Sequence record: NC_017972.1
Reading direction: 5' to 3' (one strand)
DNA length: 64,000 bases
Position numbers and translations under genes: made by a program
Shown: positions 15,477-44,026 of the stretch, piece after piece
How positions within the stretch are numbered: position 1 is the first letter of the stretch
Layout of the letters: the number at the start of each line of letters is the position of its first letter
Notes under the pieces: model-generated
What the model was told of the DNA's origin: nothing
The model's database searches: none
Seen by the model: only the letters and a program-made list of their open reading frames with translations

Positions 15477-16340
15477 TTAAATTACGAATTGTTTTAATTC
15501 AGCGTTCCACAAGTGTTTGAATTCATCACGAATAACAAACACCATCTTGCCACGCGGCAGGCCGGTTGTGTCCTTTGCTTCGGGGCTATGGAACGCATCG
15601 CTGTACAACTCACATCCAATTACCGTTCCCAGTTTGGCCTGAGATAGGATATCGCTTTTAGTAATCGGGTCCAGCATGGTTGCAAACAGATCAGAACCTA
15701 GAATGCTTGACCATGCGTCCGCATGAACCAAAACGTATTTGGATTTGCAGGCAAAACCCATCACGTATGCAGGCTCGGTTTCAATAAGTTCTACGTCAAG
15801 CTGTACGCCGTGAGTCATGGCTTCGGGCAACCGTTTAAAGTATTCCGAATTCGCTATTTCTTCCTGAACTGGGGTTGTCTCAGGAACGTCGTGCTTAGCC
15901 GCATGGTGCGGAACAAAAATCACTTTGCCTTGCGTTTCAGGCGAATGATCTTTCAGGTGCGGCGGCAGAAAGGCATCTGTGTAAACGCGACAATTGGCCA
16001 GCGTGCCTACGCTGCCATCCAGCACTAAATCGTAACGGGTGATCGGATCAAGCAAATAGGCCCAGTGATTCATGCTTGCGATGCTCGCCCACGCACTATT
16101 ATGGATGAGAACATAAGCAGCTTCTGCAAGATAAGGAAGCGCTTTATCGGGGTTGTCGAAAACGTTTTCGTCTACAATCTCGCCGTGCTCCAAAGCCTCT
16201 TGCAGCCTTACGAAATACTCACAGCCTGCCTGCTGTTCATCATCCGTCGTGTATTGCTTCGTCGGATGTTTTGCGGCAGTGGCCTCAAGCAGTTGCACAA
16301 TTTTTTCACGCAATTCTTCGTTACAAGGATGCTCGCTCAT
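15477..16340 (-). CDS. protein with a tandem-duplicated ~100 aa domain (LDPIT..D.....GT...C..Y.DAF..P..KD)
   Basis: clear internal repeat at aa 41-143 and 166-269. Confidence 0.8.
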   Translation of the reverse strand: MSEHPCNEELREKIVQLLEATAAKHPTKQYTTDDEQQAGCEYFVRLQEALEHGEIVDENVFDNPDKALPYLAEAAYVLIHNSAWASIASMNHWAYLLDPITRYDLVLDGSVGTLANCRVYTDAFLPPHLKDHSPETQGKVIFVPHHAAKHDVPETTPVQEEIANSEYFKRLPEAMTHGVQLDVELIETEPAYVMGFACKSKYVLVHADAWSSILGSDLFATMLDPITKSDILSQAKLGTVIGCELYSDAFHSPEAKDTTGLPRGKMVFVIRDEFKHLWNAELKQFVI

Positions 16341-16367
16341 TTATTAAAACCCCATGTCATTTTAGTT

Positions 16368-17582
16368 TTAGAAGAAATTGCGGAAGAAACCGCCAGTAGA
16401 GCCACGGCCCGGATATCCCGGCAAACGCGTCATTGGTGTATTGGAAACACCCAATACGCCGAACGCTCGGCTGGAATCAATGAAGCCTCCGCCTGCGCCA
16501 CCATCGCCACCCAAAATGCCAGCACGACCCAGCAGTTTTTTGTATGGCTTTACCTGCGATTCAATTTGCGCATCGATACGACCCAGTGCGCTTTCGAGTG
16601 CAGGCGTGCGGTCTACGTTTAAGCTAACCGTTTGACCGCCGAAATCAAATGCTAACGAACCCTCTGCCAAGTTCTGCGAACCCAGCGCGTAAATTGCGGA
16701 ACAGGTCAACCAGCAATCAAGCAAAGCACCCTGCATATTCGTGCCGGTGAAATTCGTGATATTTGGTTGCAGACTGTTGAAGAAACTCAAGCCACGGCTC
16801 AAGTATTCCATGAGGTCGGATTGCGTGTATTCCAATTCAGGAATGATATTCGCAACTCGCGCCCGGTTAATGTAATCCTCAAGCTGGCGCGCAGCTGTAA
16901 GGATTTGCGGAGTAATCATCCACACTTTGTAGGTCAGCGTGGTTTTCGCCAGCTTGCGCGCAGGCGTATGATCAACCAGCAAAGTCAGCGGGAACATTTG
17001 CGCTTTACCTATCACGGTCGGCATATCAATAACGGTGCGCTTTGCTTGCGCTTCCACCTTGATTTGCGGATCGGTAACATCCCAATCGTTAAAGATCGTT
17101 TTGTTGTTGTAGAAAAGCGAAACGGTAAGGGAATCTCCCTCTTTTCCCGGCTTGGCTTTAATCCCATTTTTGAAGTCTGCGGGAGTCGCGGCAACAGGCG
17201 GTTTGTATTTGATCGGCACGGTCAATTGCATACGGGTATCACGCCCGCACAAAACAACCAGATCAGAGTCCCGCCCTAATGTCGCCGGTTCAACTGTGAT
17301 TTTTGTTCGCGCCTGATGGTGCCCATCCTGTCCTTGGAAAGTCCAGCGCGCAACTAAATCAACAGAGTCCCGCAAATCCATGTTGGGGATTGGCAAATCT
17401 GCCATCCATACGCCCGGCTGCGTGGCGTGGTTTTTGGCGTAGACCTCGGCAATCACGGATTTATCAACGTCAAACAATCGTACTAACGGCGCGGGGCTAT
17501 CCTCTGCCGGTAATACAGGATCGTCAAAATCGTCAAAGAATTCTTCTGTGATTGTGCATGTAGTGCCTTCGTAAACACTCAT
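16368..17582 (-). CDS. putative virion neck / head-tail adaptor protein
   Basis: beta-rich N-terminus; the C-terminal YTQSDLMEYLSRGLSFFNSLQP...AIYAL...AFDFGGQTVSL recalls adaptor proteins of large myoviruses. Confidence 0.4.
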   Translation of the reverse strand: MSVYEGTTCTITEEFFDDFDDPVLPAEDSPAPLVRLFDVDKSVIAEVYAKNHATQPGVWMADLPIPNMDLRDSVDLVARWTFQGQDGHHQARTKITVEPATLGRDSDLVVLCGRDTRMQLTVPIKYKPPVAATPADFKNGIKAKPGKEGDSLTVSLFYNNKTIFNDWDVTDPQIKVEAQAKRTVIDMPTVIGKAQMFPLTLLVDHTPARKLAKTTLTYKVWMITPQILTAARQLEDYINRARVANIIPELEYTQSDLMEYLSRGLSFFNSLQPNITNFTGTNMQGALLDCWLTCSAIYALGSQNLAEGSLAFDFGGQTVSLNVDRTPALESALGRIDAQIESQVKPYKKLLGRAGILGGDGGAGGGFIDSSRAFGVLGVSNTPMTRLPGYPGRGSTGGFFRNFF

Positions 17583-18481
17583 TAGTCAATCACCCCTTGC
17601 GCCAACTTATTCGTCAGCGTTTCGATATCATGCAAAGCGGAATCATCCAGCGGCAATAGGCTCACCAATCCAGTTTCATCCGGCCCCACTTGGTTTTGCA
17701 CGTAACGCAACAGGAATTGGCGGATATTATCCTTTGCCTCTTCCTCATACTTTTCGTAGTATTTGCTACGGCGCCGCATGGGCAGATTCGGTGCAATGTA
17801 GCGGACATAGTATTCAGTGAATTTCGGTGTCCATTCTACCTGCAACAAATCCGGCATTCGTTTCCAGAAATCCAGAACGTATTTCCAGTCGGGCATTGCG
17901 GTGTAAAACATTGCCCGAGGGATGTTCTGCCGTAGAAACTTGGTTGCCGTTAAATCTACGCCACCACTGAATTCTCGCATGGAACGAATCACGGCTTTTG
18001 TGTAGCCGCCAGCGATATCAAAAAGATAACGCTGGTCGCGTTCCATCATTTGCTGCATACGCGCTCTGGTCAGCACAACCATCGGAATGGAAATGCTAAT
18101 GAATTCGTCCGATTGTACGTCGGTCGGTCCCCAAATTGCGGTGTACCCGCGCAGCCATGCGACATGCGCAGCTTTTGCAGCTTCGTTACGCTGAGTCCGG
18201 GCAAACGTGAAAACTAGACCAGTACGGCGCACATTCGCGGGCGGCAAATCAACTAGGCCGACGCTAGTGTTTGTGTACTGGCTCCAAACGTTCACTAGGG
18301 TAAACGTCGTTTTCGTCAAGAATGCTAACGGAGTTTTTCGCAATTGTTCCTCAAGGTAATCGAGGACCATTTTGATATCGATCAGGTAACGATCAGTGTT
18401 GTAAGTGGTGATGTAGCGGTCGCCACCGTAGGGCCATGCCGAAAGACGGAAATCTAACGGCATGGGAATGTAGATTTTCAC
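17582..18481 (-). CDS. hypothetical protein
   Basis: 299 aa ORF coupled to both neighbours. Confidence 0.7.
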   Translation of the reverse strand: MKIYIPMPLDFRLSAWPYGGDRYITTYNTDRYLIDIKMVLDYLEEQLRKTPLAFLTKTTFTLVNVWSQYTNTSVGLVDLPPANVRRTGLVFTFARTQRNEAAKAAHVAWLRGYTAIWGPTDVQSDEFISISIPMVVLTRARMQQMMERDQRYLFDIAGGYTKAVIRSMREFSGGVDLTATKFLRQNIPRAMFYTAMPDWKYVLDFWKRMPDLLQVEWTPKFTEYYVRYIAPNLPMRRRSKYYEKYEEEAKDNIRQFLLRYVQNQVGPDETGLVSLLPLDDSALHDIETLTNKLAQGVID

Positions 18482-19683
18482 TTCAACACAAGGCTGTAGG
18501 AGTGCATGTTGCCGTCGATAGAACGCAGCGAACGTGCATAACCAGATTTAACCAGCTTGGCGATATTCGGGAATCGATCAAACGCACGCAGAATCTGCGC
18601 CTGAATTTCGCGATCACCTTCGGGGAATTCCAGCAGCACTTCGTTATTTTCAACGGTAATGCCGGTAATGCCTTCGATAGCACCGACGCGGGCCTGCACT
18701 TCGGTAGCGTCAAGATTCAAATCAGCTTTAACGCTAAACGTTACGACTTCGTGCAGCGCCACTTCGCGCTCTACGCGGTTGATCAGTTTGTTTGCGATAT
18801 CGGCGGTATCTTTACCAGCAACTGGGCGGCCAATTTCGTATTTGTTCGGCAGCACAATACGGTCGTGAACATTCACGAAAGTAGTGAGGTTGAATTTGTC
18901 ATCAGCCGGAGCCAGACGCGCAGTAACCACAACTACCAACGCTTTGTGGAAGCCGTTGGTCATGTCGCGCCAGTGAGTGATATCGATGTTGAAAACGAAA
19001 TCAGTAACGCCGTCTTTGGTGCCGATGTTGACGAAATAGCCAACGGTGTCGGCATCGTCCAGCTCTTGCTGCGCGTCGGTTACGTCTTCACCTGCTTCTT
19101 TGCGGGCATCGATTTCTTTTTGCGCAGCTTCGATACGGGCACTTTCGATTTCTTCAAAATGCTTTTGCACACGGAAGAAAAGGTCATTAACTGCTGGCGG
19201 GGTATTACCCTTCGACAGTTCGGTCATGCCGTTAATGGCTTCCATGTACAGATCAACCATTGCGCTATGACGTTCGGTCATTGGTACAATTTCAGCGCGC
19301 ATACGTTCGTTCTCGGTTTTCGAGCACGCTTCGATAATCGCTTCAATCTGATCAATTGCATCGCGCATTTCCAGCGCGTCGAGGTTTTTCTGTAGCTGGC
19401 GTGGACCGGGCAAATCCAGTTTATCGACAACCAGCGAATGACCAGAACGACCACCAATTTTCTTTGGTCTGCCGCCTACGTCATCGCTGCCGCCACGAAC
19501 TTCGATAACGCTTACGCCCGAGGCAGTAGCGAGGTGACGGCCACGGAATACTTTACCGAACAAAGTACGCAGCAGACTGGTAAACTTGGAAATCAGTTTG
19601 CTGTAGCGGCCTTCGTTCTTTTTGTAGTATTTCAGCGCCTGCTCTGGCGTCATCCGTCGGATATAGCTGTAGTCTTTTTTCAT
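18478..19683 (-). CDS. hypothetical protein, probable paralogue of 19687..20685
   Basis: 401 aa; shares D..NGF...VV.LT..L and an upstream helical segment with the adjacent gene. Confidence 0.7.
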   Translation of the reverse strand: MKKDYSYIRRMTPEQALKYYKKNEGRYSKLISKFTSLLRTLFGKVFRGRHLATASGVSVIEVRGGSDDVGGRPKKIGGRSGHSLVVDKLDLPGPRQLQKNLDALEMRDAIDQIEAIIEACSKTENERMRAEIVPMTERHSAMVDLYMEAINGMTELSKGNTPPAVNDLFFRVQKHFEEIESARIEAAQKEIDARKEAGEDVTDAQQELDDADTVGYFVNIGTKDGVTDFVFNIDITHWRDMTNGFHKALVVVVTARLAPADDKFNLTTFVNVHDRIVLPNKYEIGRPVAGKDTADIANKLINRVEREVALHEVVTFSVKADLNLDATEVQARVGAIEGITGITVENNEVLLEFPEGDREIQAQILRAFDRFPNIAKLVKSGYARSLRSIDGNMHSYSLVLK

Positions 19684-19686
19684 TCT

Positions 19687-20685
19687 TTAAGAATCCATGA
19701 TTGTGTTGAGTTTATCTTTCTCAGTCTTGCCGACGTTGAGCAGTTTTGTCAGCTTGTTAAGAGAGCGTGCATCATAGATTTTTCGTTTACCTACGATGAA
19801 CGAAATCATCTTGTTGTTACCGTACTGGGATACGCGGTGGATGATATCCGTGTTCGGCAGATTCACGGCCCGGCGCAGGTACGGCAAAACCCGCTGCAAA
19901 AACTTGTTGATATCGTCCGGTTGAACAAACGATTTCAGCACAACGTTTAAGCGGTCTTCGGTGACTTCGATGTTCTTAACCAGCTTAGACGCCAACAGCT
20001 TATCGTCTTTCGGTTCGGGCGTGCCGATATACTCGAAATCCGACAGGTTATTGGTTAGATACAGTTGAACATCCTTCGCAGTATCCACGCGTGATTCGTC
20101 GCTGGAAACATACGGAGAATCTGGAACGGAAATGCGATATTCCCCACCGAGCAAAGTGAGTTTAACGGTAATGGGACCACTAACGAATCCGTTAGCGTCG
20201 GCAATACCGCCGTCCGTGCGGAAACAAATCATTTGATAGTCAGGCAAACGGACGTGCAATTGCGTGGTGTGGCTAATCTTCGATAGCAGCTTGTAAACAG
20301 GCTCTGCCAGATAGCTCAAGTGCTTGTCCATTCGAGTGGAACAAACACCATCAATCAGATTCAAAAGGCTCTTTTGGAAATCGTGAATGTTGGACTGCAT
20401 AACGCCAATCATTTGGAAACAGCGGTCGCGTTTGGAATCGCTGAATTCCTGCACAATGGATCGAGCACAACGCAGTTCAAGCAAAGAATCAACGCAAAAC
20501 GTAAGCGCTTCAACACCATCCGACACTTTCAGCTGGGATAGTTTCTTTTGGTTGAATTTGGAAACCAAAACGCTAGTGGTCATGTTAATGCGGTTTAATA
20601 CAGCGACAACCTCATTGGCGTTTCGGGCGTTTTTTAGATCAATGACGTTCTTTGAGTCATCAATATACTTTGATTGTATTTGCAA
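19687..20685 (-). CDS. hypothetical protein, probable paralogue of 18478..19683
   Basis: 332 aa; DANGFVSGPITVKLTLL. Confidence 0.7.
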   Translation of the reverse strand: MQIQSKYIDDSKNVIDLKNARNANEVVAVLNRINMTTSVLVSKFNQKKLSQLKVSDGVEALTFCVDSLLELRCARSIVQEFSDSKRDRCFQMIGVMQSNIHDFQKSLLNLIDGVCSTRMDKHLSYLAEPVYKLLSKISHTTQLHVRLPDYQMICFRTDGGIADANGFVSGPITVKLTLLGGEYRISVPDSPYVSSDESRVDTAKDVQLYLTNNLSDFEYIGTPEPKDDKLLASKLVKNIEVTEDRLNVVLKSFVQPDDINKFLQRVLPYLRRAVNLPNTDIIHRVSQYGNNKMISFIVGKRKIYDARSLNKLTKLLNVGKTEKDKLNTIMDS

Positions 20686-20740
20686 TGCTCGAACACCTAA
20701 GAATATGGTGGGTATATCGTAAAATTACCGTCCAGATAGC

Positions 20741-20776
20741 AAAAAACCCGCCTTTCCTAATGGATTGGCGGGTTTT
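20741..20776 (-). terminator. intrinsic terminator
   Basis: AAAACCCGCC/GGCGGGTTTT stem with a U tract. Confidence 0.8.
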
Positions 20777-20803
20777 CTGTATTACCTTAACTCAACCTAG
20801 AAA

Positions 20804-22093
20804 TCAGGAGAAGCTAAGTTTCTTCGGCATAGCGCCGCTTTGTTTCTTCACTGCGCCACCGCTGGCCTTGGCAGCTGGTTTAGCAGCGGCGGCTGGTTTA
20901 GCGGCAGGAGTTTTCTTGCTTGGGGTTTTCTTGTCAGCTTTAGCTGGTTTTGCGGCGGGTTTAGCTGCCGGGGTTTTCTTCGGACGACCCGGAGATTTTT
21001 TAGCTGGCTTTTCAGCTGCGGCTGGAGCGGCTGCGGCTGGGGTTTTCTTTGGACGACCCGGAGCCTTCTTCGGGGTGCCGTCTTTTTTCACGCCATGCGG
21101 AGCTGCCGGAGCGGCTGCGGCTGGGGTTTTCTTTGGACGACCCGGCTTTTTCTTTTCAGGCGCTGGAGCTGCTGGAGCTGCGGCGGCTGGAGTCTTTTTC
21201 GGACGGCCCGGTTTTTTCTTTTCTGGAGCGGCGGCTACTGGAGCGGCAGCGGGAGTCTTTTTCGGACGACCCGGTTTGCGTTTTTCAGGAGCGGCTGCGG
21301 CTGGGGTTTCAGCCGGTTTTACTTTTGGCTTACGGCCCGGAGTTTTAGCCGGGGTGCCGTCTTTTTTCAGCTTTAGACCCGAGGTTGCTGGGGCTGCGGC
21401 TGGAGCAGCGGCTGGAGTCTTTTTAGGACGACCCGGAGATTTCTTCTGAGCACCACCAGCGGCTGGCTTCGGATCAGTATTTACCAGACGTTTGCCTTTC
21501 GAGCTGATTGGCTGCTTCTGGAAGTTGCTGATGAAATCTTTCAGGCGGAACGCACCTTTCTTCTTGCTCGCCTTTTTGATTTTATCAACCACTTTCGAGT
21601 GGGCCTTGGTGGACTTCATACGCTCGGCTGCCAGAGCAGAACGCTCTTGTGCGTAACGCTGCTTTTCAGCAGTGCGCAGTTGAGCACGCTTGGCCGGGGT
21701 GACTTTGAGGTCACGGATTTTTTGCAGAGCTTTTTTGTGCTTGCTTTGTACCTGACCGCTCTTTTTACGCAGCGCTTCACGCACTTGACGCTGAGCATCA
21801 CGGGCGGATTTCAGCTGGCCGGCAGCGTGAGTACCGGCGTGGCGGTGCTTACGGCGACGAACATAGGCAGCTTTAGCTTTTTTGGCTTCGGCTTCGGTCG
21901 CACCGTGGCGCATGGCACGCAGGAAAACTTGGTGGGCCAAGTGAGCCAGTTTGTCCTCATGGGACATTTTCTGGTATTTCTCTTTGGCCTTTTTGTTGAT
22001 TTTGTGCTTATTCTTTTTGTAATAAGCTTTGTGTTTCTTGGCGTCCTTGACGACCTCGGCGCCCTTTTGCTTCTGTACAGCTTTAGTAGCCAT
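20804..22093 (-). CDS. histone H1/HMGA-like basic protein with AT-hook-like repeats
   Basis: 429 aa rich in Lys, Ala and Pro; six PGRPKKTPAA units plus KPAA repeats. Confidence 0.75.
   Translation of the reverse strand: MATKAVQKQKGAEVVKDAKKHKAYYKKNKHKINKKAKEKYQKMSHEDKLAHLAHQVFLRAMRHGATEAEAKKAKAAYVRRRKHRHAGTHAAGQLKSARDAQRQVREALRKKSGQVQSKHKKALQKIRDLKVTPAKRAQLRTAEKQRYAQERSALAAERMKSTKAHSKVVDKIKKASKKKGAFRLKDFISNFQKQPISSKGKRLVNTDPKPAAGGAQKKSPGRPKKTPAAAPAAAPATSGLKLKKDGTPAKTPGRKPKVKPAETPAAAAPEKRKPGRPKKTPAAAPVAAAPEKKKPGRPKKTPAAAAPAAPAPEKKKPGRPKKTPAAAAPAAPHGVKKDGTPKKAPGRPKKTPAAAAPAAAEKPAKKSPGRPKKTPAAKPAAKPAKADKKTPSKKTPAAKPAAAAKPAAKASGGAVKKQSGAMPKKLSFS
20970..21440 (-). repeat. coding repeats of PGRPKKTPAA
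   Basis: six imperfect copies visible in DNA and protein. Confidence 0.9.
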
Positions 22094-22239
22094 CGGGATG
22101 TTCCTCGATTAAAGGTTTGTTTAGGTTGGCTTTAATCGTAGCGCCACGATGCTAACCAACTTAATCCTAAATTAGTATGTAAAAACAAATACGCTTTTGC
22201 GACCTAACCCGAGGAACCGCCCCAATAACTACCGTTTTA

Positions 22240-23295: not shown

Positions 23296-23326
23296 AAATC
23301 CTGCTCTAATTGTGCCGTCTTCTATC

Positions 23327-23336
23327 TATTTACAGT
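23327..23336 (-). promoter_or_regulatory. ACTGTAAATA motif upstream of sbcD
   Basis: 31 nt before the start codon. Confidence 0.7.
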
Positions 23337-23767: not shown

Positions 23768-23776
23768 TGTTGTTCC

Positions 23777-24403: not shown

Positions 24404-24410
24404 CGGAATC

Positions 24411-24911
24411 TCACAGATATTCGTCGAGTTTGGTAATGCCTGCGCGAGTGCAATATTCCATCAGCGTGCCAATGCAATATTCGTCAATGTGCCCGGCGCG
24501 AAGGTCGGCTAAATCTTCGTGCGTGATCATCAATTGCGTGCAGAGTGCTACGTCGTCTTTGCGCGATGCTTTGATCCAGCGGTTCAATGTACGCAGGATA
24601 CGGGCTTTAATGCGTAGCTCGTCACGCATACAGTCTTCGTCAATCAGCGAATCCCACACATCAGGAACTGGTTTTTGCGGTTCGCGGTAGGAATCGGTAA
24701 TCAGCGTCACGTCTTCGCTAAGCTGGGTGATTTTGCGCTCAGGCGTGTCCTCGACCACACGCGGATAGGTAACGGTATTTTTCGGACCTGTTTCAGACGG
24801 CACCACAATCGCGCCCATTCCGTGCAGTGTGATATCCACATTGAGATTATTATTCTCCACGTCTTCCGGCGTATTGTTGGTTTCGTCGCAAATGACTTCG
24901 TAGTTACTCAT
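24411..24911 (-). CDS. protein with a tail-sheath-like N-terminal peptide and a C-terminal XRE/HigA-like HTH
   Basis: N-terminal YEVICDETNNTPEDVENN; C-terminal LRIKARILRTL..ITHEDLADLRAGHIDEYCIGTLMEYC. Confidence 0.6.
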   Translation of the reverse strand: MSNYEVICDETNNTPEDVENNNLNVDITLHGMGAIVVPSETGPKNTVTYPRVVEDTPERKITQLSEDVTLITDSYREPQKPVPDVWDSLIDEDCMRDELRIKARILRTLNRWIKASRKDDVALCTQLMITHEDLADLRAGHIDEYCIGTLMEYCTRAGITKLDEYL

Positions 24912-25729
24912 TCCATACCTTCCTTTTTCTCGACGCCAGAATTAATGGCTCGGATATAACGCATTTCGTAGGCACTGATTTTTAACTTCATCGCTACGTC
25001 GTCTTCATCGCCTTCCATCTGCAACGCTTTGCGGTACAGATCGACCACTTCGCCGCTCAGCAAATCCATCAATTTGGCGACTTGTTTGTCAGTCAATTTG
25101 ATTTTCTTGCTAAGCGAGGCAACCCGCGATTGCAGTTGCTTTTCGGTTTCCGTCGAGGCCAACCATTTGCACACAAGCTGGCGCACCGGGGTTTGGTGGG
25201 TAGCAGACGGCATGGTATAAACGAACGACATGAAATTCATCAGGAAAGTATGCTGTTCGCGAGCGACTTTCTTGGCCGCTTCCACCACGTCGAATTTGGT
25301 ACGCGTGATATGCTGCTGCTTTGACGCAGGAATGCTTTTGAAATCGACAAGATTAAACCCGTCAACGTGGAACGCTTCCGCTGCTTTGTAGTCTACCGGA
25401 ATCACGTTGTACATCGACAGGGAAATAGGATCGTCACAGACGTAGCAAATGGTTTTATCAGTGATGCTTTTGCGGTGCGCCTCAAACGTAAACACGTCAG
25501 AGAAAATCACATGCTTGCGCTGCTCAAACTTGGCAGGGCTAGCCACAAGCGCAATGGCGGATCGTGGCGTACCGAGTTTGCGCAGGTGAACCAAAACTTT
25601 GTCAGGCGCAGTGTGCGCAAACCCGTATGCGATCATTTCTTTTTGCTCTTTCTGACTTGTTTCAACAGGCTGGCGGTCATCGCTTTCGCGCTCACGTCGA
25701 ACCGATAGGAGGCCATGAAATACGTACAC
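24908..25729 (-). CDS. hypothetical protein
   Basis: 273 aa ORF; alternative start at 25636. Confidence 0.7.
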   Translation of the reverse strand: MYVFHGLLSVRRERESDDRQPVETSQKEQKEMIAYGFAHTAPDKVLVHLRKLGTPRSAIALVASPAKFEQRKHVIFSDVFTFEAHRKSITDKTICYVCDDPISLSMYNVIPVDYKAAEAFHVDGFNLVDFKSIPASKQQHITRTKFDVVEAAKKVAREQHTFLMNFMSFVYTMPSATHQTPVRQLVCKWLASTETEKQLQSRVASLSKKIKLTDKQVAKLMDLLSGEVVDLYRKALQMEGDEDDVAMKLKISAYEMRYIRAINSGVEKKEGME

Positions 25730-25766
25730 ATGTTCGCGTATTTCAGGTTACGCATTTCAACCGTTT

Positions 25767-26048
25767 TCATCGAACGTCACTCAGTTTGGCGCCCGCTTTG
25801 CATAACTCGTAAGTCATGCGCGACAGGCTGGTAAGATCGAGCACAAAAGAAACGGCAACATCGAAGCTTTCTTCGCGCCACTGTACACCGAGAATGCACG
25901 GATAAAACGTTGGCAATTCGTCCTCGTTACGAACGTAGGGCAAATCACCATTTCGTTCGTCGTCATTGTCGGCGTACACGGCACGCAGGAAATCGTCTAC
26001 TTCGCGTTTGTCTTTTACGACTTTTGCGTAGACGCTAGCTGGCAGCAT
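25767..26048 (-). CDS. small hypothetical protein
   Basis: probable start MLPASVY at 26048, overlapping the sbcC stop. Confidence 0.55.
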   Translation of the reverse strand: MLPASVYAKVVKDKREVDDFLRAVYADNDDERNGDLPYVRNEDELPTFYPCILGVQWREESFDVAVSFVLDLTSLSRMTYELCKAGAKLSDVR

Positions 26049-31570: not shown

Positions 31571-31601
31571 GTCGAAGCTCTTTCGTTGTGGGTATACCTA
31601 C

Positions 31602-31611
31602 TATTTACAGT
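31602..31611 (-). promoter_or_regulatory. ACTGTAAATA motif upstream of dnaX
   Basis: 31 nt before the start codon. Confidence 0.7.
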
Positions 31612-31919
31612 TAGATAACCATAGATGCAGGTGCGGGTTTAGGTGGCGCTGGGACAGGCGCGGGCAGAGCCTGTTTAGGTGGAATGCCGCACAAAATAAC
31701 TTTGCTATCCGTTCCAAACTTTGCAGTGTAGGAAACTGTGTTGCCGGTGTAAATGCGAATGTACACAATGCCGTCCACACAGATTTGATCTTGAGTGGAG
31801 CCGCTTCTGTAAACCATCGCTTGCCCTTCTTGCGAAAGGCTATACACAGGCGGAGGCGAGTCGGAACCACAACCGGCCAGAGCCGATGCCAGTGCGGCAA
31901 TCAAAAATACCCGTTTCAT
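31611..31919 (-). CDS. lipoprotein
   Basis: signal peptide MKRVFLIAALASA followed by the lipobox LAGC; Pro-rich C-terminus. Confidence 0.8.
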   Translation of the reverse strand: MKRVFLIAALASALAGCGSDSPPPVYSLSQEGQAMVYRSGSTQDQICVDGIVYIRIYTGNTVSYTAKFGTDSKVILCGIPPKQALPAPVPAPPKPAPASMVI

Positions 31920-31937
31920 GTCCCAGTACCTATTTCG

Positions 31938-33104
31938 TTATTCGGCTTTGGCCGCTTTGATAGTTTTTTCGAGAAGCTTTGTGCAAGACTTCGGAATTTG
32001 CTTGCCTTTGAGGTGCGCTACAAATACTTCGGCAAACATTTTCTGCACGGAGGTGGCAGCGACTTGGCCCAACACGGCAGTTACCGAACCAGTGTTAGAA
32101 GTTGCTGCCGAGGTCGGCCAGATATCACCGAGAACCTTGCTGTTTTGGTTCAGCAGAATGTTCACGTCTTCTGGCGACATTTTGTGAATTTTCTTGAGGT
32201 AGGCCAGCGCCTCTTTGAACAGCGCGGCTTCGTCTTCTTCAAGATCACGCTGGAATTCGCGCACGCTCATTTGCGAGGAAACCAGCGAAGTGAACAGCGC
32301 TTCCATGTCGGCTTTTTTCGCCTTGGAAACTTTGGTCAGGGAGTTGTAAAGTTCCAGCCATTCCGAACGCACTTTCTCAGGAACGTAACGGAACCAAATG
32401 GCAAGGCCCGTTTCGTGGAGAACGTAGGTTTGGTTTTCGATCTGATCCTCAAGGATGACCGGGTGGAGTTTTACCAAATCAATCGGCGAGCCAGTTTTGA
32501 AACTGACGTTGTAGGTGCCGGTGGCTTTGCCTTTTGGCGAATGCACTTCGACACGCGCAAACGGATAGACTTTACCGAGGCCAATTTCTTCGACTTTCGC
32601 TACGGCTTTCTTGATGCCGATGCGCAGCGCTTTGGCTTCCGCTTCGTTGATCTTGCGGTAGTCGTGAATCTGCCCGATTGGCGAATCGATTTCACCGTGA
32701 CGCGGATTAATGGAAACGCCGAAAGCAGAACCGGGCGACGGCTGCTTACCGAGGTTGGCAACCAGCGAATCCGCGTCATATTCCACGGTTACTGGTTCGT
32801 CCATTTCCATTGTGTCCTCGACGTAAGCGGTATTGCGCTTAGGCGAGTGAGCGAAACAGAGTTTGTTTTTCTTGCCGATGCGGACGATGATGAAATCGTC
32901 TTTTTCGACAGTGATCATTGTCTTGTTGGAGACTTTGACCTTTTTCTTTACTTCGGTCGGTTCAGCACTGCCAGACACGTCGATGCTCTGGTCTTTCATG
33001 CTTTTCTTCGACTTCTTTTCTTTCTTCGGTTGCAGGTCGAGTCCTTTGGACAGGGCTACGTCCTTAGACTTCTTTTTCTTCTTTTTCTTTAGATCATCAC
33101 TCAT
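31938..33104 (-). CDS. hypothetical protein with degenerate zincin-like motifs and a Lys-rich N-terminus
   Basis: YVLHETGLAIW (HExxH with the second His lost) and downstream MFAEVF. Confidence 0.55.
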   Translation of the reverse strand: MSDDLKKKKKKKSKDVALSKGLDLQPKKEKKSKKSMKDQSIDVSGSAEPTEVKKKVKVSNKTMITVEKDDFIIVRIGKKNKLCFAHSPKRNTAYVEDTMEMDEPVTVEYDADSLVANLGKQPSPGSAFGVSINPRHGEIDSPIGQIHDYRKINEAEAKALRIGIKKAVAKVEEIGLGKVYPFARVEVHSPKGKATGTYNVSFKTGSPIDLVKLHPVILEDQIENQTYVLHETGLAIWFRYVPEKVRSEWLELYNSLTKVSKAKKADMEALFTSLVSSQMSVREFQRDLEEDEAALFKEALAYLKKIHKMSPEDVNILLNQNSKVLGDIWPTSAATSNTGSVTAVLGQVAATSVQKMFAEVFVAHLKGKQIPKSCTKLLEKTIKAAKAE

Positions 33105-33429
33105 TTTTCAGTACCTCTATGTACGCTACTTCTCCCTCGTAAGGAATGCCTGTAGCGGCGTGAAAGAAACGGGAAAGCTTGCGGGAATTCGCGGTGTGCA
33201 GTTTGTGTGCATCGACATGCACGCGAGAGCCTGCAAGCTTCACATAATGAATTTGCGAGAATGGAATCTCACGCTCTTCGACAATCGTGCGGATACTGGC
33301 GAACTTTTCCTTTTGGAAATCGCCCATGTACCAACCGCCTGTGAACGTTGGCAGGCTGGTCGGTGCGGGCGAACCGAACGTGCAGCGCCACACTTTTACT
33401 TTACGAAAATTTACTCTGCGAGATTTCAT
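33097..33429 (-). CDS. hypothetical protein
   Basis: 110 aa ORF overlapping the downstream start. Confidence 0.6.
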   Translation of the reverse strand: MKSRRVNFRKVKVWRCTFGSPAPTSLPTFTGGWYMGDFQKEKFASIRTIVEEREIPFSQIHYVKLAGSRVHVDAHKLHTANSRKLSRFFHAATGIPYEGEVAYIEVLKNE

Positions 33430-33453
33430 AGGTTTGCATCTTGCAATAGGGCG

Positions 33454-33711
33454 TCACGACGGACGGCTTAGGCCTGCCAAATAGACAGCTGGGTTAAACG
33501 ATTCGTCGGCTACCACTTTCAGTTCCAATTTCTGGACTTGGTAGTGGCAGTTGCCGTTACGAATTGCACTAAGAATGTCGTTGTACTTTTGCTCACTGAT
33601 GAATTCCCAATCGTCCCAGTCGGCTTCGATTTGTTCATCGGTGTGTGGGCCGCGACCGGCTGTGTCGTAGCGATACCAGCTCCGCTTTCGGTAAACGAAT
33701 TCTGTAGACAT
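33454..33711 (-). CDS. hypothetical protein, paralogue of the next ORF
   Basis: W.EWE.ISEQKY..I...HYQ.Q.L..V...SFNPA.Y shared with 33711..34220. Confidence 0.7.
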   Translation of the reverse strand: MSTEFVYRKRSWYRYDTAGRGPHTDEQIEADWDDWEFISEQKYNDILSAIRNGNCHYQVQKLELKVVADESFNPAVYLAGLSRPS

Positions 33712-34220
33712 TAGCGCGTCCGTTCGTGTTCTGGATTGTGGAACGTAAACGTGGTGTGCAGCACGTTGCCGATTTTCAGCGAACCGTAGGTGCCTTGGAA
33801 TTCCAGTGCAGCCGCGTATTCAATCTGCGCAATTCGTTCGTTTGCATTTGCGGCATACACATGGTTTCGCTCAGCAAGCAACCACGGCGTCCACTCTTTG
33901 CCGTCGAAGCAACGGAACAGCGAAATACGTTTCGTTTTTGCAGGTGTCGGGATGTTCTGCTTTGCCCGTTCGTGCTCGATGTATTTCGCCGGGTTAAACG
34001 ATTTGTCTTCTGCGACCACAACGTCAAGCGCCTGCGCCTGATAATGGCTCGGGCTAGGCCACGCAATGTATTCGCAGATTTCTTTGTACTTCTGCTCGCT
34101 GATGATTTCCCATTCGCCCCAGCCTGCTTCGATCTGCTCAGGCGTGATATCTTTGTGGCGTGAACCGTACCAGACGTTCACGTCCCAAGTGCGATAACGA
34201 TAAATCTTTTCGGTTGTCAT
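33711..34220 (-). CDS. hypothetical protein, paralogue of the previous ORF
   Basis: same domain plus a C-terminal extension. Confidence 0.7.
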   Translation of the reverse strand: MTTEKIYRYRTWDVNVWYGSRHKDITPEQIEAGWGEWEIISEQKYKEICEYIAWPSPSHYQAQALDVVVAEDKSFNPAKYIEHERAKQNIPTPAKTKRISLFRCFDGKEWTPWLLAERNHVYAANANERIAQIEYAAALEFQGTYGSLKIGNVLHTTFTFHNPEHERTR

Positions 34221-34222
34221 GA

Positions 34223-34843
34223 TTATTCGCCGACCGTAACGTGACCAGCCAAGGCTGCAATTTGTTTGGTCATGAAACCGTTAACCAAACATTCGTTTTC
34301 AACGAGGCCCATATACTCCAGTTTGATATTTTCTTGGAACTGGAACTCGCCACCGGGCAGCATGGTTTCATTGAAACGTTTGAGGGTTTTTGCCCAAATA
34401 CAACCGTTGCCTCCGACGTAGAGGACCGTTACCGGGTAGTTTTCCCGTGCGTTCGGATTTGCGCGTTCGTTCGCATAACCCAAAACCAGATATCGATTGC
34501 CGTTAGTGTGATGGGTAAACGAAGCGCCGATGCCGGGCAGCATATGACTGGACGGCACGCCTTCAATAGCACGCGGACGGTTTACGATTTCGTATGCGCC
34601 ACCCAACTCAAACGAATGAACAATTTTGGTTTCGCCCGCATCGTTAACACCCACGATAACGGAATCATCGGCGGCGGTGATGTGATACAAACCAGAATCG
34701 CATTTAATGCTGTGCAGTCCGACAACACACGGCATGTATTTCAGCACGCCAGCTTCTACGCGCACATTGTACAGGCGCTGGCTTTGGTTAAGCGTCATTA
34801 CCTGATCAATCAGGTCGTTTACTTGCTCTTCGTTGTATCGCAT
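34223..34843 (-). CDS. protein with a C-terminal DUF1653-like domain
   Basis: FTHHTNGNRYLVLGYA...VTVLYV..IWAKTLKRFNE fits the DUF1653 pattern. Confidence 0.55.
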   Translation of the reverse strand: MRYNEEQVNDLIDQVMTLNQSQRLYNVRVEAGVLKYMPCVVGLHSIKCDSGLYHITAADDSVIVGVNDAGETKIVHSFELGGAYEIVNRPRAIEGVPSSHMLPGIGASFTHHTNGNRYLVLGYANERANPNARENYPVTVLYVGGNGCIWAKTLKRFNETMLPGGEFQFQENIKLEYMGLVENECLVNGFMTKQIAALAGHVTVGE

Positions 34844-35469
34844 GGCGCACCTTTAATCATTAGTTTGTTTTGCAGTAGGAGGACAACGGCGTACCCGTGC
34901 GCGGCGATGATATGCGCTTTTGTGGATAAACAGGTGCCGTTGTATGCGTTGCTCAAAATGACGTATGGATCGAAATCCAATGGGAGGTCCGCTGCCTCAC
35001 AAATGCCCAGCAATTTTTCTACCAGCTCAGGCATTACCATAATCGGCAAAGGAACCGGGCCATTCTTTGGCGCTGCGTCCCGCATAACGATTCGACCGTG
35101 CGCGTCGGGGAATTGCACAACAATGCGATCCGCCAATACATGCACACGGGCCGTTTGCCACATATCAACCACGGTCGAAGTGTACGAAGCAAACGTTACA
35201 AACGAATCGAATTCGGCGCGGACAAAACTTAACAGCTCATAGCCGAGATTTACGTCGTCTAATTCAAGCTGCAAAGGTTTTGACCGCGTGCCGCTCGGGC
35301 GCCAATAGCCCTGTTTGGTTAGCGCGGTGTACGGGCGTTTCTCCCGAAAACCAACCGCGTATCCGTTGCCCGCGAAGTAATACAGGCTGTTGTCGTAAAG
35401 GCACATATTCGCGCCGAACGAACGGCACTGTTTTACAAAGGCAGAGTCAAGGATGCTAACCTCGATCAT
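34819..35469 (-). CDS. hypothetical protein
   Basis: 216 aa ORF preceded by the ACTGTAAATA motif. Confidence 0.7.
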   Translation of the reverse strand: MIEVSILDSAFVKQCRSFGANMCLYDNSLYYFAGNGYAVGFREKRPYTALTKQGYWRPSGTRSKPLQLELDDVNLGYELLSFVRAEFDSFVTFASYTSTVVDMWQTARVHVLADRIVVQFPDAHGRIVMRDAAPKNGPVPLPIMVMPELVEKLLGICEAADLPLDFDPYVILSNAYNGTCLSTKAHIIAAHGYAVVLLLQNKLMIKGAPCDTTKSK

Positions 35470-35498
35470 GGTGAGTTTCCTACTACGTTGTTTCCTAA

Positions 35499-35508
35499 TA
35501 TTTACAGT
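35499..35508 (-). promoter_or_regulatory. ACTGTAAATA motif
   Basis: 29 nt before the start at 35469. Confidence 0.7.
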
Positions 35509-36890
35509 ATTTCGCCCTGCATACGAATGGTTGGAATGCGCTTGAATTCAATTTCGTCGGGCTTTGATTTCTTTTTCTTCGGCGCTACCTTGGCTACCGG
35601 TTTCGCTTTCTGTTTGGCAGCAGCCTTTGCAGCTTCGTCGTCTTTCTTTTTCTGGCGGGCGGCGCGGCGCTCTTCTTTCTGGCGCTCTTCCTCAGCCTTT
35701 TTATTCAGACGTTTTTCCCGGCGTTCGTCACGCGCTTTGTTTTCTGCATCGACCACTTTACGGCGGGCGGCTTGCTCATTCGCTTTACGTTTATCCAGAT
35801 AGGCCTTGGCCTCGCTGGCGTCTTTGTTCCGTTTCTCTTCTTTTTCCATTGTTTTCAGGCGATCAATCGTTTCGTTGCGATAGCGCACGGTAAGTTTTGC
35901 TGCAACGTCCGTAGGTTCAGAATCAGCGGTAACGTTGGTGTGCTCAACCTGCATACGGCAATCGATTGTGAAAAACCGATCTTTTACTCGCGCGTTGCGG
36001 GTCTGTACCTGCGCCATAACCAGCATGTCGTAAAGGTGATCGATGCCGGTCGCCTGCTCGATCATGCCCTCGCGCCGCGTCATGTGTTTTTGCAAAGCAA
36101 TGGTGCGGGTTTTGCTCAGAATGTCGCGAACTGCTTCCACGCGATGGAAAGAGTATTTTTCAAACTGCGCAGCGCGGTCGCCTGCAATCATATTGGAATA
36201 CTGCGCCGGGAAACTGAATACTGCGCTTTCAAAATCTGTTTGGTTGGCGTAGTGCTTTTTACGCTGGATGGGACTCAGGCTCAGGTGGCTTTCGTAAATG
36301 TCGCGCTGGTATTTCCAACGCTTCGCCATGTTCGCATATTCCTTGCGCGCAAGGTTGAGCATGACCGAACCATAATGCAGGTTTTCAAAATGCTTGCCGT
36401 CGGTAGCCAACGTCAAAGCAATCTGGCCTTTGCTGCTGTAGGACGTGAACAGCACAGCAAACGGAACGGTCGGCGCTTTATACGAAATTTCTTGCCACTC
36501 ACGGGTAAAACAAGTGCCGTCAATCAGCACGCTTTCTGTTTTCCCGCTCCAATAGGTATCAGCGTAGATTTTGCGCAGGTACGCTTCCTGCTCGCGGAAA
36601 TCATCCATGCCCTGAATGTCCCACATTTCGATAATGCGCAGCGCAAACGCATTCATGTTGCTAAGCATTTTGCGGATGCTGGATTCTGTGCTGCCCCAGC
36701 TTTTCGGACAGCCTTTCGACAGGCGACGTTTTGCGTTGTATTCGGGATTGAATTCTAAGCCGGTCACGTCACGCGCAAGGCTATTGTGCATGAGGTGCGT
36801 ATAAATCATGGTGAACACGTTGTCGGTGTATGTTTTGCTAATGTGTTTTGCGTTGCCGCCTTGCGTGTAGCTAGGTACGTAAACTTGCAT
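35502..36890 (-). CDS. hypothetical protein with a charged, Lys-rich coiled-coil C-terminus
   Basis: 462 aa ORF. Confidence 0.75.
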   Translation of the reverse strand: MQVYVPSYTQGGNAKHISKTYTDNVFTMIYTHLMHNSLARDVTGLEFNPEYNAKRRLSKGCPKSWGSTESSIRKMLSNMNAFALRIIEMWDIQGMDDFREQEAYLRKIYADTYWSGKTESVLIDGTCFTREWQEISYKAPTVPFAVLFTSYSSKGQIALTLATDGKHFENLHYGSVMLNLARKEYANMAKRWKYQRDIYESHLSLSPIQRKKHYANQTDFESAVFSFPAQYSNMIAGDRAAQFEKYSFHRVEAVRDILSKTRTIALQKHMTRREGMIEQATGIDHLYDMLVMAQVQTRNARVKDRFFTIDCRMQVEHTNVTADSEPTDVAAKLTVRYRNETIDRLKTMEKEEKRNKDASEAKAYLDKRKANEQAARRKVVDAENKARDERREKRLNKKAEEERQKEERRAARQKKKDDEAAKAAAKQKAKPVAKVAPKKKKSKPDEIEFKRIPTIRMQGEIL

Positions 36891-37482
36891 GGGTGTTTCC
36901 TCTGGTCAGTATTTCATTTATGTAATTCGAGTGGGCAAAGCTGGAGCACCCCGAAACCGAAAAGCGGCGCGGGGGAAAGGGGGCGGCGGAACTGGGGATA
37001 GGGGGCGCCTTTCGGCGCTATTATGCTAAGCCGCTCGGCGTGCATTATACGCCCTGAACCTTGTTATGGTTTGACCGTCCATTTATGGAACGCGCAAACA
37101 GAGCTATCCCTTTAATTCACTCCCCACCGGCCTGCCTCACGCCTTTTCATCCGATGTGGGTTTCGATGCTGAATGTGGGGGACGCTGGGTGGCTGGAATA
37201 GGGGTCGCTTCGCTCCCCTTTTCCGCTTCGCGGAATCCTATTCTTTTTCGCTTCGCTCAGCTCGCTAGCGCTCGCAGCGTCGCTGCGCTCCGCTACGTTG
37301 CTTTTGCAAGCTTCCAGCCGGTTCCTTATTCTGCATTTCTTTTTCAATCAACCTGTGTTCCTTGTGCTCCCTTGTGTGGGGGAATCTCTGCGCTTCCTGT
37401 GGTTCGTTCCTCACCCCGCATTGAACAATCATACCAACCATTGTTCCAATTGCTCCCTCAATACCAACGTCCCTATAGTCAG

Positions 37483-37491
37483 TATTTACAG
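37483..37491 (-). promoter_or_regulatory. CTGTAAATA motif pointing into the non-coding region
   Basis: matches the recurrent motif; no credible CDS nearby downstream. Confidence 0.5.
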
Positions 37492-37602
37492 ATTTTAAAT
37501 CTACCCTAATCCAGCCTTAATCGGGGTCTATTAGGTTGGGTCCATTAGAATGCAACCCTAATGATTAGGCCCATTCATTCAAATGCGTATAATGCGGGCA
37601 AT

Positions 37603-37628
37603 AAAAAAGGGGACCGATTAAGGCCCCC
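37603..37628 (-). terminator. intrinsic terminator
   Basis: GGGGGCC/GGTCCCC stem plus TTTTTT on the minus strand, after the stop at 37639. Confidence 0.8.
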
Positions 37629-37638
37629 TTTAGGTGGA

Positions 37639-38307
37639 TCAATAGCTGGATGCTGATGCTGTTAGCGTGTCGTAAAGCTCAAGGATATTCGCATTAAAGT
37701 CGAATGCCTCGGTGCCTTGCTTGTTATTGCAGACAACGCAATTAGGCCAATCGTGTGTAGCGCAGCAATTGCTGGGTGGTAACGGGCATGGATCGGCGCC
37801 CATTAGCATACGCTCGCAAACCAGTTTAACCAGCTTGCAAATCTGATCAGAAGTAATGCCCGTAGTCTGGCAATCAGAATCTGCTGGGAAATTTTGAACA
37901 GGTACAGGTTCTCCCTGTGCAACCGCCGGTGCAACCTCCGTAACGGGCTGCAATTCGTTAATGGTTTCGCCATTTAAAGAAATGCGGATTTTCCGAGGTC
38001 CATAGGTTTGAATGCTAACGTCGGTCGCGCCGTCCCGCTGGAACGTCGTAACGTCTGCATACGAGCCTTCGCTGCTAGCCGTTGCTGTGTGTTGATGATC
38101 CAGCTTCCCTTTGATTTCGTGTTTAATGTGATCCCAAATCTGCGCGAATTTCTTGCTGCTTTTGTTGGCAATCGCATCAGCGAGTTTTTCGCCGTTGGAT
38201 TGGGAAAGCAGCGGCATAATCATGCGCAGCATTGCGGATCGTTTATTCTTGCCCGAGCGGTTGCGGGCCAGCGCAATCATGTTGGAGGCAATCTGTAATT
38301 CTTTCAT
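37639..38307 (-). CDS. hypothetical protein with a Cys-rich C-terminus
   Basis: 222 aa; CPLPPSNCCATHDWPNCVVC. Confidence 0.7.
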   Translation of the reverse strand: MKELQIASNMIALARNRSGKNKRSAMLRMIMPLLSQSNGEKLADAIANKSSKKFAQIWDHIKHEIKGKLDHQHTATASSEGSYADVTTFQRDGATDVSIQTYGPRKIRISLNGETINELQPVTEVAPAVAQGEPVPVQNFPADSDCQTTGITSDQICKLVKLVCERMLMGADPCPLPPSNCCATHDWPNCVVCNNKQGTEAFDFNANILELYDTLTASASSY

Positions 38308-38897
38308 TACTTGCCACCTTTGATTTTGTCGGCAATGCGGCGGTAGAACGAACGCTTTGGCCGGTGGATTTCACACGTCACCAATTCCAGATCATCGGTA
38401 CGGCCTACGGTTTTGATTTCAGAATGCACGAAATCTTTGTAGGTGCCGACTACGCTGCCTTCCGGGTCTTTTGCTGCGGCTGCGAACATATCAATAATCG
38501 CAATCAAATCTTCCTGCGTCGGTTGCCAATCATCGCTACCGATTTTCAGGTGCAGCATACGCTTGAGCGGACCGGGCAGATAACCGTTTTCAAATTCCGT
38601 CTGCGGGCTAAACGATTCGTAGCCGTTTTCGTAGCGAACGAAATAGCCGCCAGTGTGGACGAAATGATCCATGACGAATTCGTCTGAAACCACGACTTCC
38701 AGCAGGCCGGATACGTCGCGCAGTACGTATTCAGTTTTCTGTGCCGATGGGAACACGCTACCGAAACCGTCGCCGTGTGGAACCTGTACCATTTGCGGTG
38801 GCACAACTTCGCCATTTTTCATCTTGGGGCGAGCGGTAATGCTGAAAATCTGAAACGCTTCTACCTGCTTGTGGCACCGCCAGATAGGAAGTTGCAT
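38307..38897 (-). CDS. phage protein of the GGY.V.Y.NGY.S.SP..FE.GY family fused to a portal-like segment
   Basis: GGYFVRYENGYESFSPQTEFENGY followed by LHLKIGSDDWQPTQEDL..DPEGSVV. Confidence 0.6.
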   Translation of the reverse strand: MQLPIWRCHKQVEAFQIFSITARPKMKNGEVVPPQMVQVPHGDGFGSVFPSAQKTEYVLRDVSGLLEVVVSDEFVMDHFVHTGGYFVRYENGYESFSPQTEFENGYLPGPLKRMLHLKIGSDDWQPTQEDLIAIIDMFAAAAKDPEGSVVGTYKDFVHSEIKTVGRTDDLELVTCEIHRPKRSFYRRIADKIKGGK

Positions 38898-44016: not shown

Positions 44017-44026
44017 TATTTACAGT
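44017..44026 (-). promoter_or_regulatory. ACTGTAAATA motif upstream of the primase
   Basis: 30 nt before the start codon and oriented with the only inverted gene in this block. Confidence 0.7.

Follow-up and report, generated by a model that had tools for sequence, protein, structure and literature searches.

Why should three short genes in the replication and repair region of a jumbo phage each encode a piece of a virion protein? The stretch analyzed here (the window, 64,000 nucleotides) is identical (100%) to positions 62001–126000 of the record of Pseudomonas phage Lu11 (NC_017972.1/JQ768459), a 280.5-kb jumbo myovirus of P. putida. The genes in question are gp106 (15477..16340; 287 amino acids, aa), gp115 (24411..24911; 166 aa), and gp133 (38307..38897; 196 aa), all on the minus strand, as are all features for which no other strand is named; coordinates are those of the window unless the record is mentioned. 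The three genes lie in a long minus-strand run of replication and repair genes, which also encodes polymerase, helicase, clamp, clamp loader, SbcCD-like proteins, and endolysin. The genuine virion genes of Lu11 sit elsewhere in the genome: the major capsid protein (MCP) gp065, outside the window; the portal protein gp191 (660 aa); and the sheath proteins gp061 and gp082, two paralogues of the T4 gp18 type. We tentatively favor, at a probability of about 0.45 for the whole statement including the proposed mechanism, the reading that these are independent accessory proteins mimicking virion proteins, probably in counter-defense. Its descriptive part alone (homology, conservation, modular shuffling, and the fusion network) is very probably correct.

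An earlier note on this DNA, made from its letters alone, had described a capsid-like, a sheath-like, and a portal-like segment in the three open reading frames (ORFs), and all three were recovered, both with PHROG profiles and in a search of all stop-to-stop ORFs of the Lu11 record (n = 2913, translated, loci kept separate) queried with the structural proteins. Among the PHROG profiles, gp106 matched the major head protein family phrog_2522 in two stretches (expectation value, E, 2.9e-14; profile positions 198–268 of 318), gp115 aa 2–32 the tail sheath family phrog_10581 (positions 867–897 of 915; E 7.8e-6), and gp133 aa 112–166 the portal family phrog_16240 (positions 291–346 of 643; E 6.4e-9). 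Among the ORFs, gp065 retrieved gp106 twice (E 7e-12 and 9e-11; 44% identity), gp191 aa 287–338 retrieved gp133 aa 112–162 (E 5e-6; 40% identity), and gp082 aa 486–519 retrieved the start of gp115 (E 2.5e-4; 41% identity). This is the proteome self-search that the earlier note had called for, and gp106 (twice), gp133, and gp115 were the sole matches of these structural proteins beyond their true paralogues; in an all-against-all search, the remaining internal similarities of Lu11 were ordinary paralogues, for example tail fibers and sheaths. The positions given before proved accurate (gp106 aa 41–269, gp115 aa 1–28, gp133 aa 113–153), as did the architectures: the capsid piece is duplicated in tandem, the sheath piece stands before an HTH_37 domain, and the portal piece follows an unrelated N-terminal domain. 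The ranking of the matches had to be reversed, however: the sheath match, thought to be the strongest, is the shortest and weakest and is partly deleted in a close homologue (P0007), and the capsid and portal matches are robust. Single-sequence searches of the Protein Data Bank (PDB) with gp106, gp115, gp133, gp107, and the portal returned nothing meaningful. Two origins of the pieces were considered and set aside: recent duplication, given that the sheath piece has no significant similarity to the sheath genes at the DNA level and that the capsid and portal pieces share only 40–44% protein identity with their sources; and co-conversion by homing endonucleases, despite HNH genes nearby, given that the copies are old and conserved as separate families.

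The capsid piece is the best defined. gp106 consists of a short helical N-terminus and two tandem modules resembling the MCP A-domain: module 1 (aa 34–147; 15900..16241), matched by a module profile at a domain E of 6e-39, and module 2 (aa 158–287; 15480..15869), matched over aa 158–273 at a domain E of 2e-36. By BLASTP, module 1 aligns with gp065 aa 210–298 (E 2e-13) and module 2 with gp065 aa 246–312 (E 5e-14; 43% identity), so that both fall within gp065 aa 210–312, at 35–44% identity; in the reverse direction, the profile built from the family of small modules reached gp065 at E 8.7e-20. gp065 is homologous to a solved HK97-fold MCP of 280 residues (6wkk), and the NCBIfam model of HK97-fold MCPs (NF042927) matches gp106 twice, at about positions 167–235 of 280. 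With 49.7 bits against a cut-off of 80, gp106 stays below full membership in that family, and the model (N-arm, E-loop, P-domain, A-domain) is not spanned. From the HK97 topology we infer that the copied part is the A-domain core running into the next strand of the P-domain. An AlphaFold2 model of gp106, built on a 21-sequence alignment, has a mean predicted local distance difference test (pLDDT) score of 79.8 and contains two compact alpha/beta modules at pLDDT 83–91. Self-matches aside, the viral structure that comes closest to the model is the Achromobacter phage Motura MCP (E 1e-3; probability 1.0; 89 columns); the next neighbors are weak and comprise small uncharacterized proteins (109–155 aa) of Erwinia phage Y3, PaBG, BcepSauron, Motura, and Lu11 (I1TQM5). 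gp106 thus has the A-domain core both in sequence (identity to gp065, module profile) and in fold (match to the Motura MCP). The module profile had no match in the PDB.

The capsid piece belongs to a dedicated family of intact small proteins with one or two modules. A search of 1.84 billion representative proteins recovered 13 single-module proteins of 112–170 aa; two proteins with two modules (P0008 and P0014); one with a single module and a C-terminal extension (P0012); a twin of gp106 at 97% identity; a fusion protein, P0023, to which we return below; and true MCPs. The nearest relatives of module 1 are P0010, P0011, and the second module of P0008; the C-terminal tail of module 2 is common to P0009, P0012, and the first module of P0008. 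Mean identity is 0.35 between modules and MCPs, 0.36 among modules, and 0.74 among MCPs; 11 of the 42 columns that are nearly invariant in MCPs are kept in at least 70% of the modules. In a neighbor-joining tree without bootstrap support, gp106-type and small modules stand apart from the MCPs; those of P0014, P0023, and P0024 are placed closer to the MCPs, a hint that the modules arose more than once. Two cysteines also recur in most small modules, the first close to the N-terminus, the second in the hairpin that follows the conserved glycine; MCPs lack both. The module profile in addition weakly matches Lu11 gp225 (record 171831–172550; E 0.0012) in three fragments; together with the weak structural neighbors of the gp106 model in the BFVD database, this may mean that the family is wider than sequence searches reveal.

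The gp106 locus turns over rapidly. Between the homologues of gp107 and gp105, no module was found in phage HRDY3, one in L020 and L121–L123, and two in Lu11 and L019, where their order is opposite to that in gp106 (absent here means not found, as pattern-based locus scans miss divergent copies). Across these relatives the genes flanking the locus are 70–82% identical and the module proteins 34–54%. Between gp106 and its twin, the ratio of non-synonymous to synonymous substitution rates (dN/dS) is 0.15, based on 22 differences (14 synonymous, 8 non-synonymous); neighboring genes give 0.05–0.19. Despite its rapid change, gp106 is thus subject to purifying selection, and the locus looks like an accessory locus caught in an arms race. 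All 22 nucleotide differences from the twin (L008, 2139–3002) fall in the N-terminus and module 1, and the linker and module 2 (about 420 nucleotides) are identical, which suggests a recent recombination boundary inside the gene.

gp133 comprises an N-terminal domain (hereafter N-domain), a portal-like segment (aa 112–162; 38412..38564), and a poorly conserved tail. The segment corresponds to gp191 aa 287–338 at 40% identity, and its residues W124, P126, A141, D144, and P145 equal W300, P302, A317, D320, and P321 of gp191, the five residues of this stretch that do not vary among ten portals of 19–77% identity; gp133 thus keeps all five. It does not have the full architecture of a portal (wing, stem, clip, crown), being 196 aa long and covering only positions 291–346 of the 643 of the portal family. 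Lying between the long helix and a conserved wing/tunnel motif, the segment probably derives from the clip region. Homologues of gp133, with 45–51% overall identity, are found at the corresponding locus of HRDY3 and of Lu11-like phages from metagenomes, and the segment is kept in eight of nine aligned syntenic family members. The exception (L047/L048) keeps the N-domain without the portal segment and has a different C-terminal module instead, from which we take the portal segment to be a separable module. This C-terminal module, conserved and 60–80 aa long, occurs in four of the nine members (P0004, L043, L044, and L047), in the other three of them in addition to the portal segment. Mean pairwise identity within the family is 0.56 for the portal segment, 0.61 for the N-domain, and 0.28 for the tail; the segment is 0.46–0.64 identical to the real portal, so that family members resemble the portal as much as they resemble each other. 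Since Lu11 and HRDY3 are 92% identical in this region of the portal itself and 45% in their gp133 homologues, the portal copy is old and evolves fast, yet has stayed portal-like.

The N-domain (aa 1–106; 38580..38897) recurs widely among phages as a small domain and is predicted to have a beta-rich fold (pLDDT 73–86 in an AlphaFold2 model of gp133 built on five sequences). It was found in at least 80 viral contigs, mostly as stand-alone proteins of 86–95 aa in small phages and prophages; at two prophage-type loci its gene, with a PHROG 322 (Acb4-type) gene beside it, separates the lysis genes from that of the small terminase subunit. Elsewhere the domain is fused to a Tad2-like domain (PF11195; L085 and L098, the former with PF21825 in addition), to Acb4 (PF13876; L092 and L117), and to a MazG-like PHROG that itself contains the N-domain. 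PF13876 is the Acb4 family of sponges that act against the cyclic-oligonucleotide-based antiphage signaling system (CBASS) (bioRxiv 10.1101/2024.12.30.630793); Tad2, Acb4, and PF21825 ("Sequestin") have been shown experimentally to be sponges and are often fused to each other (bioRxiv 10.1101/2024.12.30.630793, 10.1101/2025.07.12.664507), Sequestin having been discovered through its fusion to a known sponge (bioRxiv 10.1101/2025.07.12.664507). By the same fusion logic, the N-domain is a candidate counter-defense module. In Pfam searches PF11195, PF13876, and PF21825 were missing from gp106, gp115, and gp133 and found only in other N-domain proteins. A further N-domain protein of 375 aa (L093, 2962–4089) has a C-terminal part with a non-significant match to the Lar restriction-alleviation family (E 0.046), which may be another anti-defense partner.

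The N-domain also connects the two virion-derived pieces. The metagenomic protein P0023 (260 aa), from a jumbo-phage-like replication gene cluster, consists of an N-domain (BLASTP against gp133, E 8e-10) and a capsid module (aa 132–246 matched by the MCP model); through this fusion we see one promiscuous N-domain that has taken up the portal piece and, in a different lineage, the capsid piece. The partners of the three pieces had been described as different; they are indeed unrelated domains, but the capsid and portal pieces are linked through P0023. Searched against the PDB, the profile of the N-domain gave a single match, below significance, to the oligonucleotide/oligosaccharide-binding (OB) fold of the phage L protein Dec (6e3c, residues 24–100; E 0.021), and 6e3c was also the top Foldseek match of the gp133 model (E 0.087; probability 0.80; template-modeling score 0.21–0.29), followed by other OB-folds. 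As these two weak lines agree, we treat the likeness to Dec as a lead. Two GenBank records name homologues "capsid decoration protein"; the one copy inspected, that of Dolphis, lies in an accessory region.

We return to what such pieces might do. Sensors of the portal and of the MCP are established in bacteria: Avs-type sensors recognize the portal and other core proteins, CapRel the MCP, and SpbK the portal YonE; phages in turn carry small proteins that counter portal sensing, the known counter being Nip (PMC13728456). On the reading that we favor, gp106 and gp133 each carry an exapted piece of one of the phage's own virion proteins, maintained by selection: in gp106 the A-domain core of an HK97-fold capsid protein, present twice, and in gp133 a strand-helix-strand portal segment, probably of the clip, attached to a Dec-like N-domain. 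The pieces would act as molecular mimics, displaying the surface of a capsid or portal protein while lacking what assembly into a shell or ring requires, and would bind whatever normally recognizes that surface. The target would most probably be a host immune sensor of virion proteins, or else an assembly partner of a competitor; the sensor is preferred on account of the company that the pieces keep, that is, the fusions. Ranked, the candidate targets would be a host sensor of virion proteins, then assembly partners of the phage itself or of a rival, and last self-association only. gp106 and gp133 would then belong to a fast-turnover repertoire of counter-defense and accessory genes. A bolder version, in which the capsid modules and the portal segment are the first anti-defense proteins made from virion fragments, occupying sensors without activating them, and in which the Dec-like N-domain is a further undescribed counter-defense module, is doubtful, although we consider it worth stating.

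Several known systems are close enough to be instructive. The fused "polyvalent" sponges of the Tad2/Acb4/Sequestin type are likewise small phage accessory proteins made by the shuffling of short modules, and the same fusions contain the N-domain of gp133 (L085, L092, L098, and L117); unlike them, gp133, gp106, and gp115 have no sponge domains, and their partner modules are virion-derived. Phage L Dec (PDB 6e3c) resembles the gp133 N-domain over its OB-fold, residues 24–100, and it is non-essential, being present in phage L and absent from the near-identical P22 (PMC6449081); gp133, by contrast, has no counterpart of the C-terminal trimeric spike of Dec, and the genes discussed here stand among accessory and replication genes. 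Duplication of structural genes within the phage lineage has likewise given rise to full-length paralogues of virion proteins, among them the pair of sheath proteins in the PaBG/Lu11 group (PMC7412058) and vertex proteins that are paralogues of capsid proteins. Such paralogues build the virion; the pieces described here have just 30–100 residues and lack the N-arm, E-loop, and P-domain of the MCP and the wing, stem, and crown of the portal. Nip, finally, blocks the effector domain and is no portal mimic. In the literature reviewed on virion sensing and counter-defense, we found no decoy made from a virion fragment.

A number of results weigh against mimicry in counter-defense. A virion fragment bound to a sensor might activate that sensor instead of blocking it. 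The single-module proteins and gp106 have no N-domain, so that the argument from fusions reaches them via P0023 alone, and the module of P0023 is nearer to the MCPs than gp106-type modules are (in the neighbor-joining tree, which has no bootstrap values). The sole structural relative of the N-domain is a capsid-binding decoration protein, which points to a role in the virion. No solved portal aligned across the segment of gp133, and a profile of ten portals reached just YonE of SPbeta, weakly and downstream of the segment (E 0.022); in the gp133 model the segment is a strand and a helix at low confidence (pLDDT 40–58), and the model had no match below E 0.001 among PDB folds; nor did the model of gp106, for which HK97-fold capsid proteins made up 9 of the 50 top matches, all non-significant. 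In the neighborhood of one small module gene, Pfam was uninformative except for a DNA methylase on the same contig, and nothing there linked the small modules to anti-defense islands. PADLOC, whose library covers defense and not counter-defense, gave no meaningful match.

The third gene, gp115, is of a different kind. Its sheath-like piece (aa 1–29; 24825..24911) equals gp082 aa 486–519, inside Pfam Phage_sheath_1C (PF17482), and is followed by a conserved linker and a C-terminal helix-turn-helix (HTH) DNA-binding domain, HTH_37 (PF13744; aa 96–159; 24435..24626), which at E 1.8e-6 and 28.1 bits clears the Pfam gathering threshold of 27; this domain is homologous to HTH proteins of the phiKZ gp114 type. 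The sheath-like piece is the most conserved motif of the sheath C-terminal domain, and the corresponding motif in solved T4 gp18 structures aligns with it; at threshold, neither Pfam sheath domain (PF04984, PF17482) is found in gp115, and the match to PHROG 10581 spans just 31 positions. As the start codon of gp115 overlaps the stop codon of gp116 and a purine-rich ribosome-binding site lies upstream, this N-terminus is probably translated. Homologues are restricted to very close relatives, and pattern scans of IMG/VR found none; one at 87% identity retains the sheath motif, and another at 77% (P0007) has an 8-residue deletion through it. There is no sign of selection on the motif itself. Most likely, an old recombination left the sheath piece behind, and it now serves only as the N-terminus of an HTH regulator. 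A weak match of gp115 to Toxin B in the PDB search (E 0.041) was dismissed as chance.

Mimicry in counter-defense has to be weighed against the possibility that the proteins serve the virion itself, with the gp133 family binding capsids in the manner of Dec and the pieces joining or regulating the phage's own head assembly or DNA packaging, for example by capping capsomer or portal-ring interfaces or by holding subunits before assembly. The Dec OB-fold is the only PDB match of the N-domain profile (E 0.021) and Dec the top Foldseek match of the gp133 model (probability 0.80), homologues are annotated as capsid decoration proteins in two GenBank records, residues that never vary in the assembling proteins are preserved in the pieces, and gp106 and gp115 lie downstream of middle/late promoter motifs. 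We nevertheless consider a virion role unlikely: the likeness to Dec is below significance; the genes stand among replication and repair genes or in accessory slots and not in head modules; gp106 is missing from HRDY3 and from most surveyed relatives and is thus inessential for assembly; the modules evolve far faster than the MCP (0.36 versus 0.74), and gp133 far faster than the portal (45% versus 92%); and fusions to Tad2, Acb4, and PF21825 sponges are hard to square with a protein that decorates the outer capsid. The pieces might instead be oligomerization scaffolds that multimerize an attached domain without any mimicry, taken as they are from ring-forming interfaces (the capsomer center, the portal dodecamer). 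The parts of the HK97 and portal folds that match the pieces contact neighboring subunits, although their assignment as the source parts is inferred here; known sponges act as tetramers or hexamers, and the portal segment of gp133 sits where oligomeric Tad2 and Acb4 sit in other N-domain fusions. Such scaffolds are improbable given that neither gp106 nor the single-module proteins come with an effector domain to multimerize, that L047 has the N-domain without the portal segment, and that N-domain proteins mostly stand alone.

That all three similarities are functionless remnants of illegitimate recombination, the alternative offered in the earlier note, is in our view very unlikely, and the evidence divides by piece. 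Phage genomes are mosaic, and the sheath piece, about 29 aa at the start of gp115 and without relatives outside the immediate clade, has lost 8 residues in the 77%-identical P0007; for this piece we prefer debris. In contrast, the capsid and portal pieces lie in ORFs that stay intact across relatives differing by 50–65%, keep family-invariant residues, and include a dedicated small-protein family whose module folds confidently in the AlphaFold2 model; this conservation in divergent relatives and the dN/dS of 0.15 for gp106 make debris unlikely for them. The counter-defense role that had been proposed, as decoys for immune sensors, gains indirect support from the fusions of the N-domain to Tad2, Acb4, PF21825, and the capsid piece. 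The proposal that did not survive is that the three ORFs form one system. A single coordinated three-gene system, jamming sensors of capsid, sheath, and portal jointly, could be argued for from the placement of the genes within 23 kb on the same strand and from the fusion partner that the capsid and portal pieces have in common elsewhere (the N-domain). We regard it as extremely unlikely. About 8 and 13 kb of replication and repair genes, as well as promoter motifs, lie between gp106, gp115, and gp133. The promoter core motif CTGTAAATA occurs in 13 exact copies in the window (0.1 expected), and these assign gp106 and gp115 to separate units: going upstream, the gene string of gp106 first meets an exact middle/late promoter core ahead of gp112 (23327..23335), which is annotated in the record, and the gene string of gp115 first meets an exact core ahead of gp121 (31602..31610); the gp135–gp132 string that holds gp133 has no exact copy. 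Distributions differ as well, gp133-type genes being common in the clade, gp106-type genes sporadic, and gp115 confined to the nearest kin of Lu11; HRDY3 has a gp133 homologue, lacks gp106, and has no gp115 match listed, and no surveyed relative keeps all three except the nearest kin of Lu11. Given the separate transcription units and differing distributions, gp106, gp115, and gp133 are three independent chimeric accessory genes and no single system.

If mimicry is the correct reading, cut-down copies of their most conserved proteins would be the phages' answer to the sensing of those very proteins, a route that we did not meet in the counter-defense literature reviewed, and partial self-matches to virion proteins in accessory genes would provide a sequence rule for recognizing it. 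Regardless of function, the analysis defines a small-protein family derived from the capsid A-domain, a portal-derived segment as a shuffled module, and a small, widely distributed domain that occurs in the company of three proven sponge families. A practical consequence is that profile-based annotation already mislabels gp106 and the HRDY3 homologue of gp133 as structural proteins, because of their partial matches to virion families. RefSeq wrongly gives Lu11 gp106 the name "major head protein", although gp065 is the true MCP; the HRDY3 record names the 196-aa homologue of gp133 (L009, 6001–6591) "portal protein", and the real portal of HRDY3 is another gene.

Some minor observations concern the promoters and the annotation of the record. 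Further exact copies of CTGTAAATA lie at 13241–13249 and 44017–44025 (minus strand) and at five plus-strand sites beyond 53600; these extra copies were not seen among the promoter features listed for record positions 62001–111000. All 13 copies match the local gene orientation, which switches strand near 40.5–46 kb. In the RefSeq feature table of NC_017972.1, one "regulatory/promoter" feature covers record positions 107991–280538, evidently a coordinate error. The gene adjoining gp106, gp107 (16368–17582), is named "head-tail connector protein" in RefSeq (PHROG 17327), although it is part of the replication gene string. Conservation across the clade is about 80%, and the protein has no sequence match in Pfam, NCBIfam, or the PDB, so that the name is a tentative one. 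Outside the window, three more genes bear the RefSeq name "tail sheath": gp054 (record 25617–25943; 108 aa), which has no BLAST similarity to the true sheaths, and gp246 and gp247 (record 200550–202848), which are paralogues with 42% identity and neither of which matches gp061 or gp082; these names may be further partial or mistaken labels.

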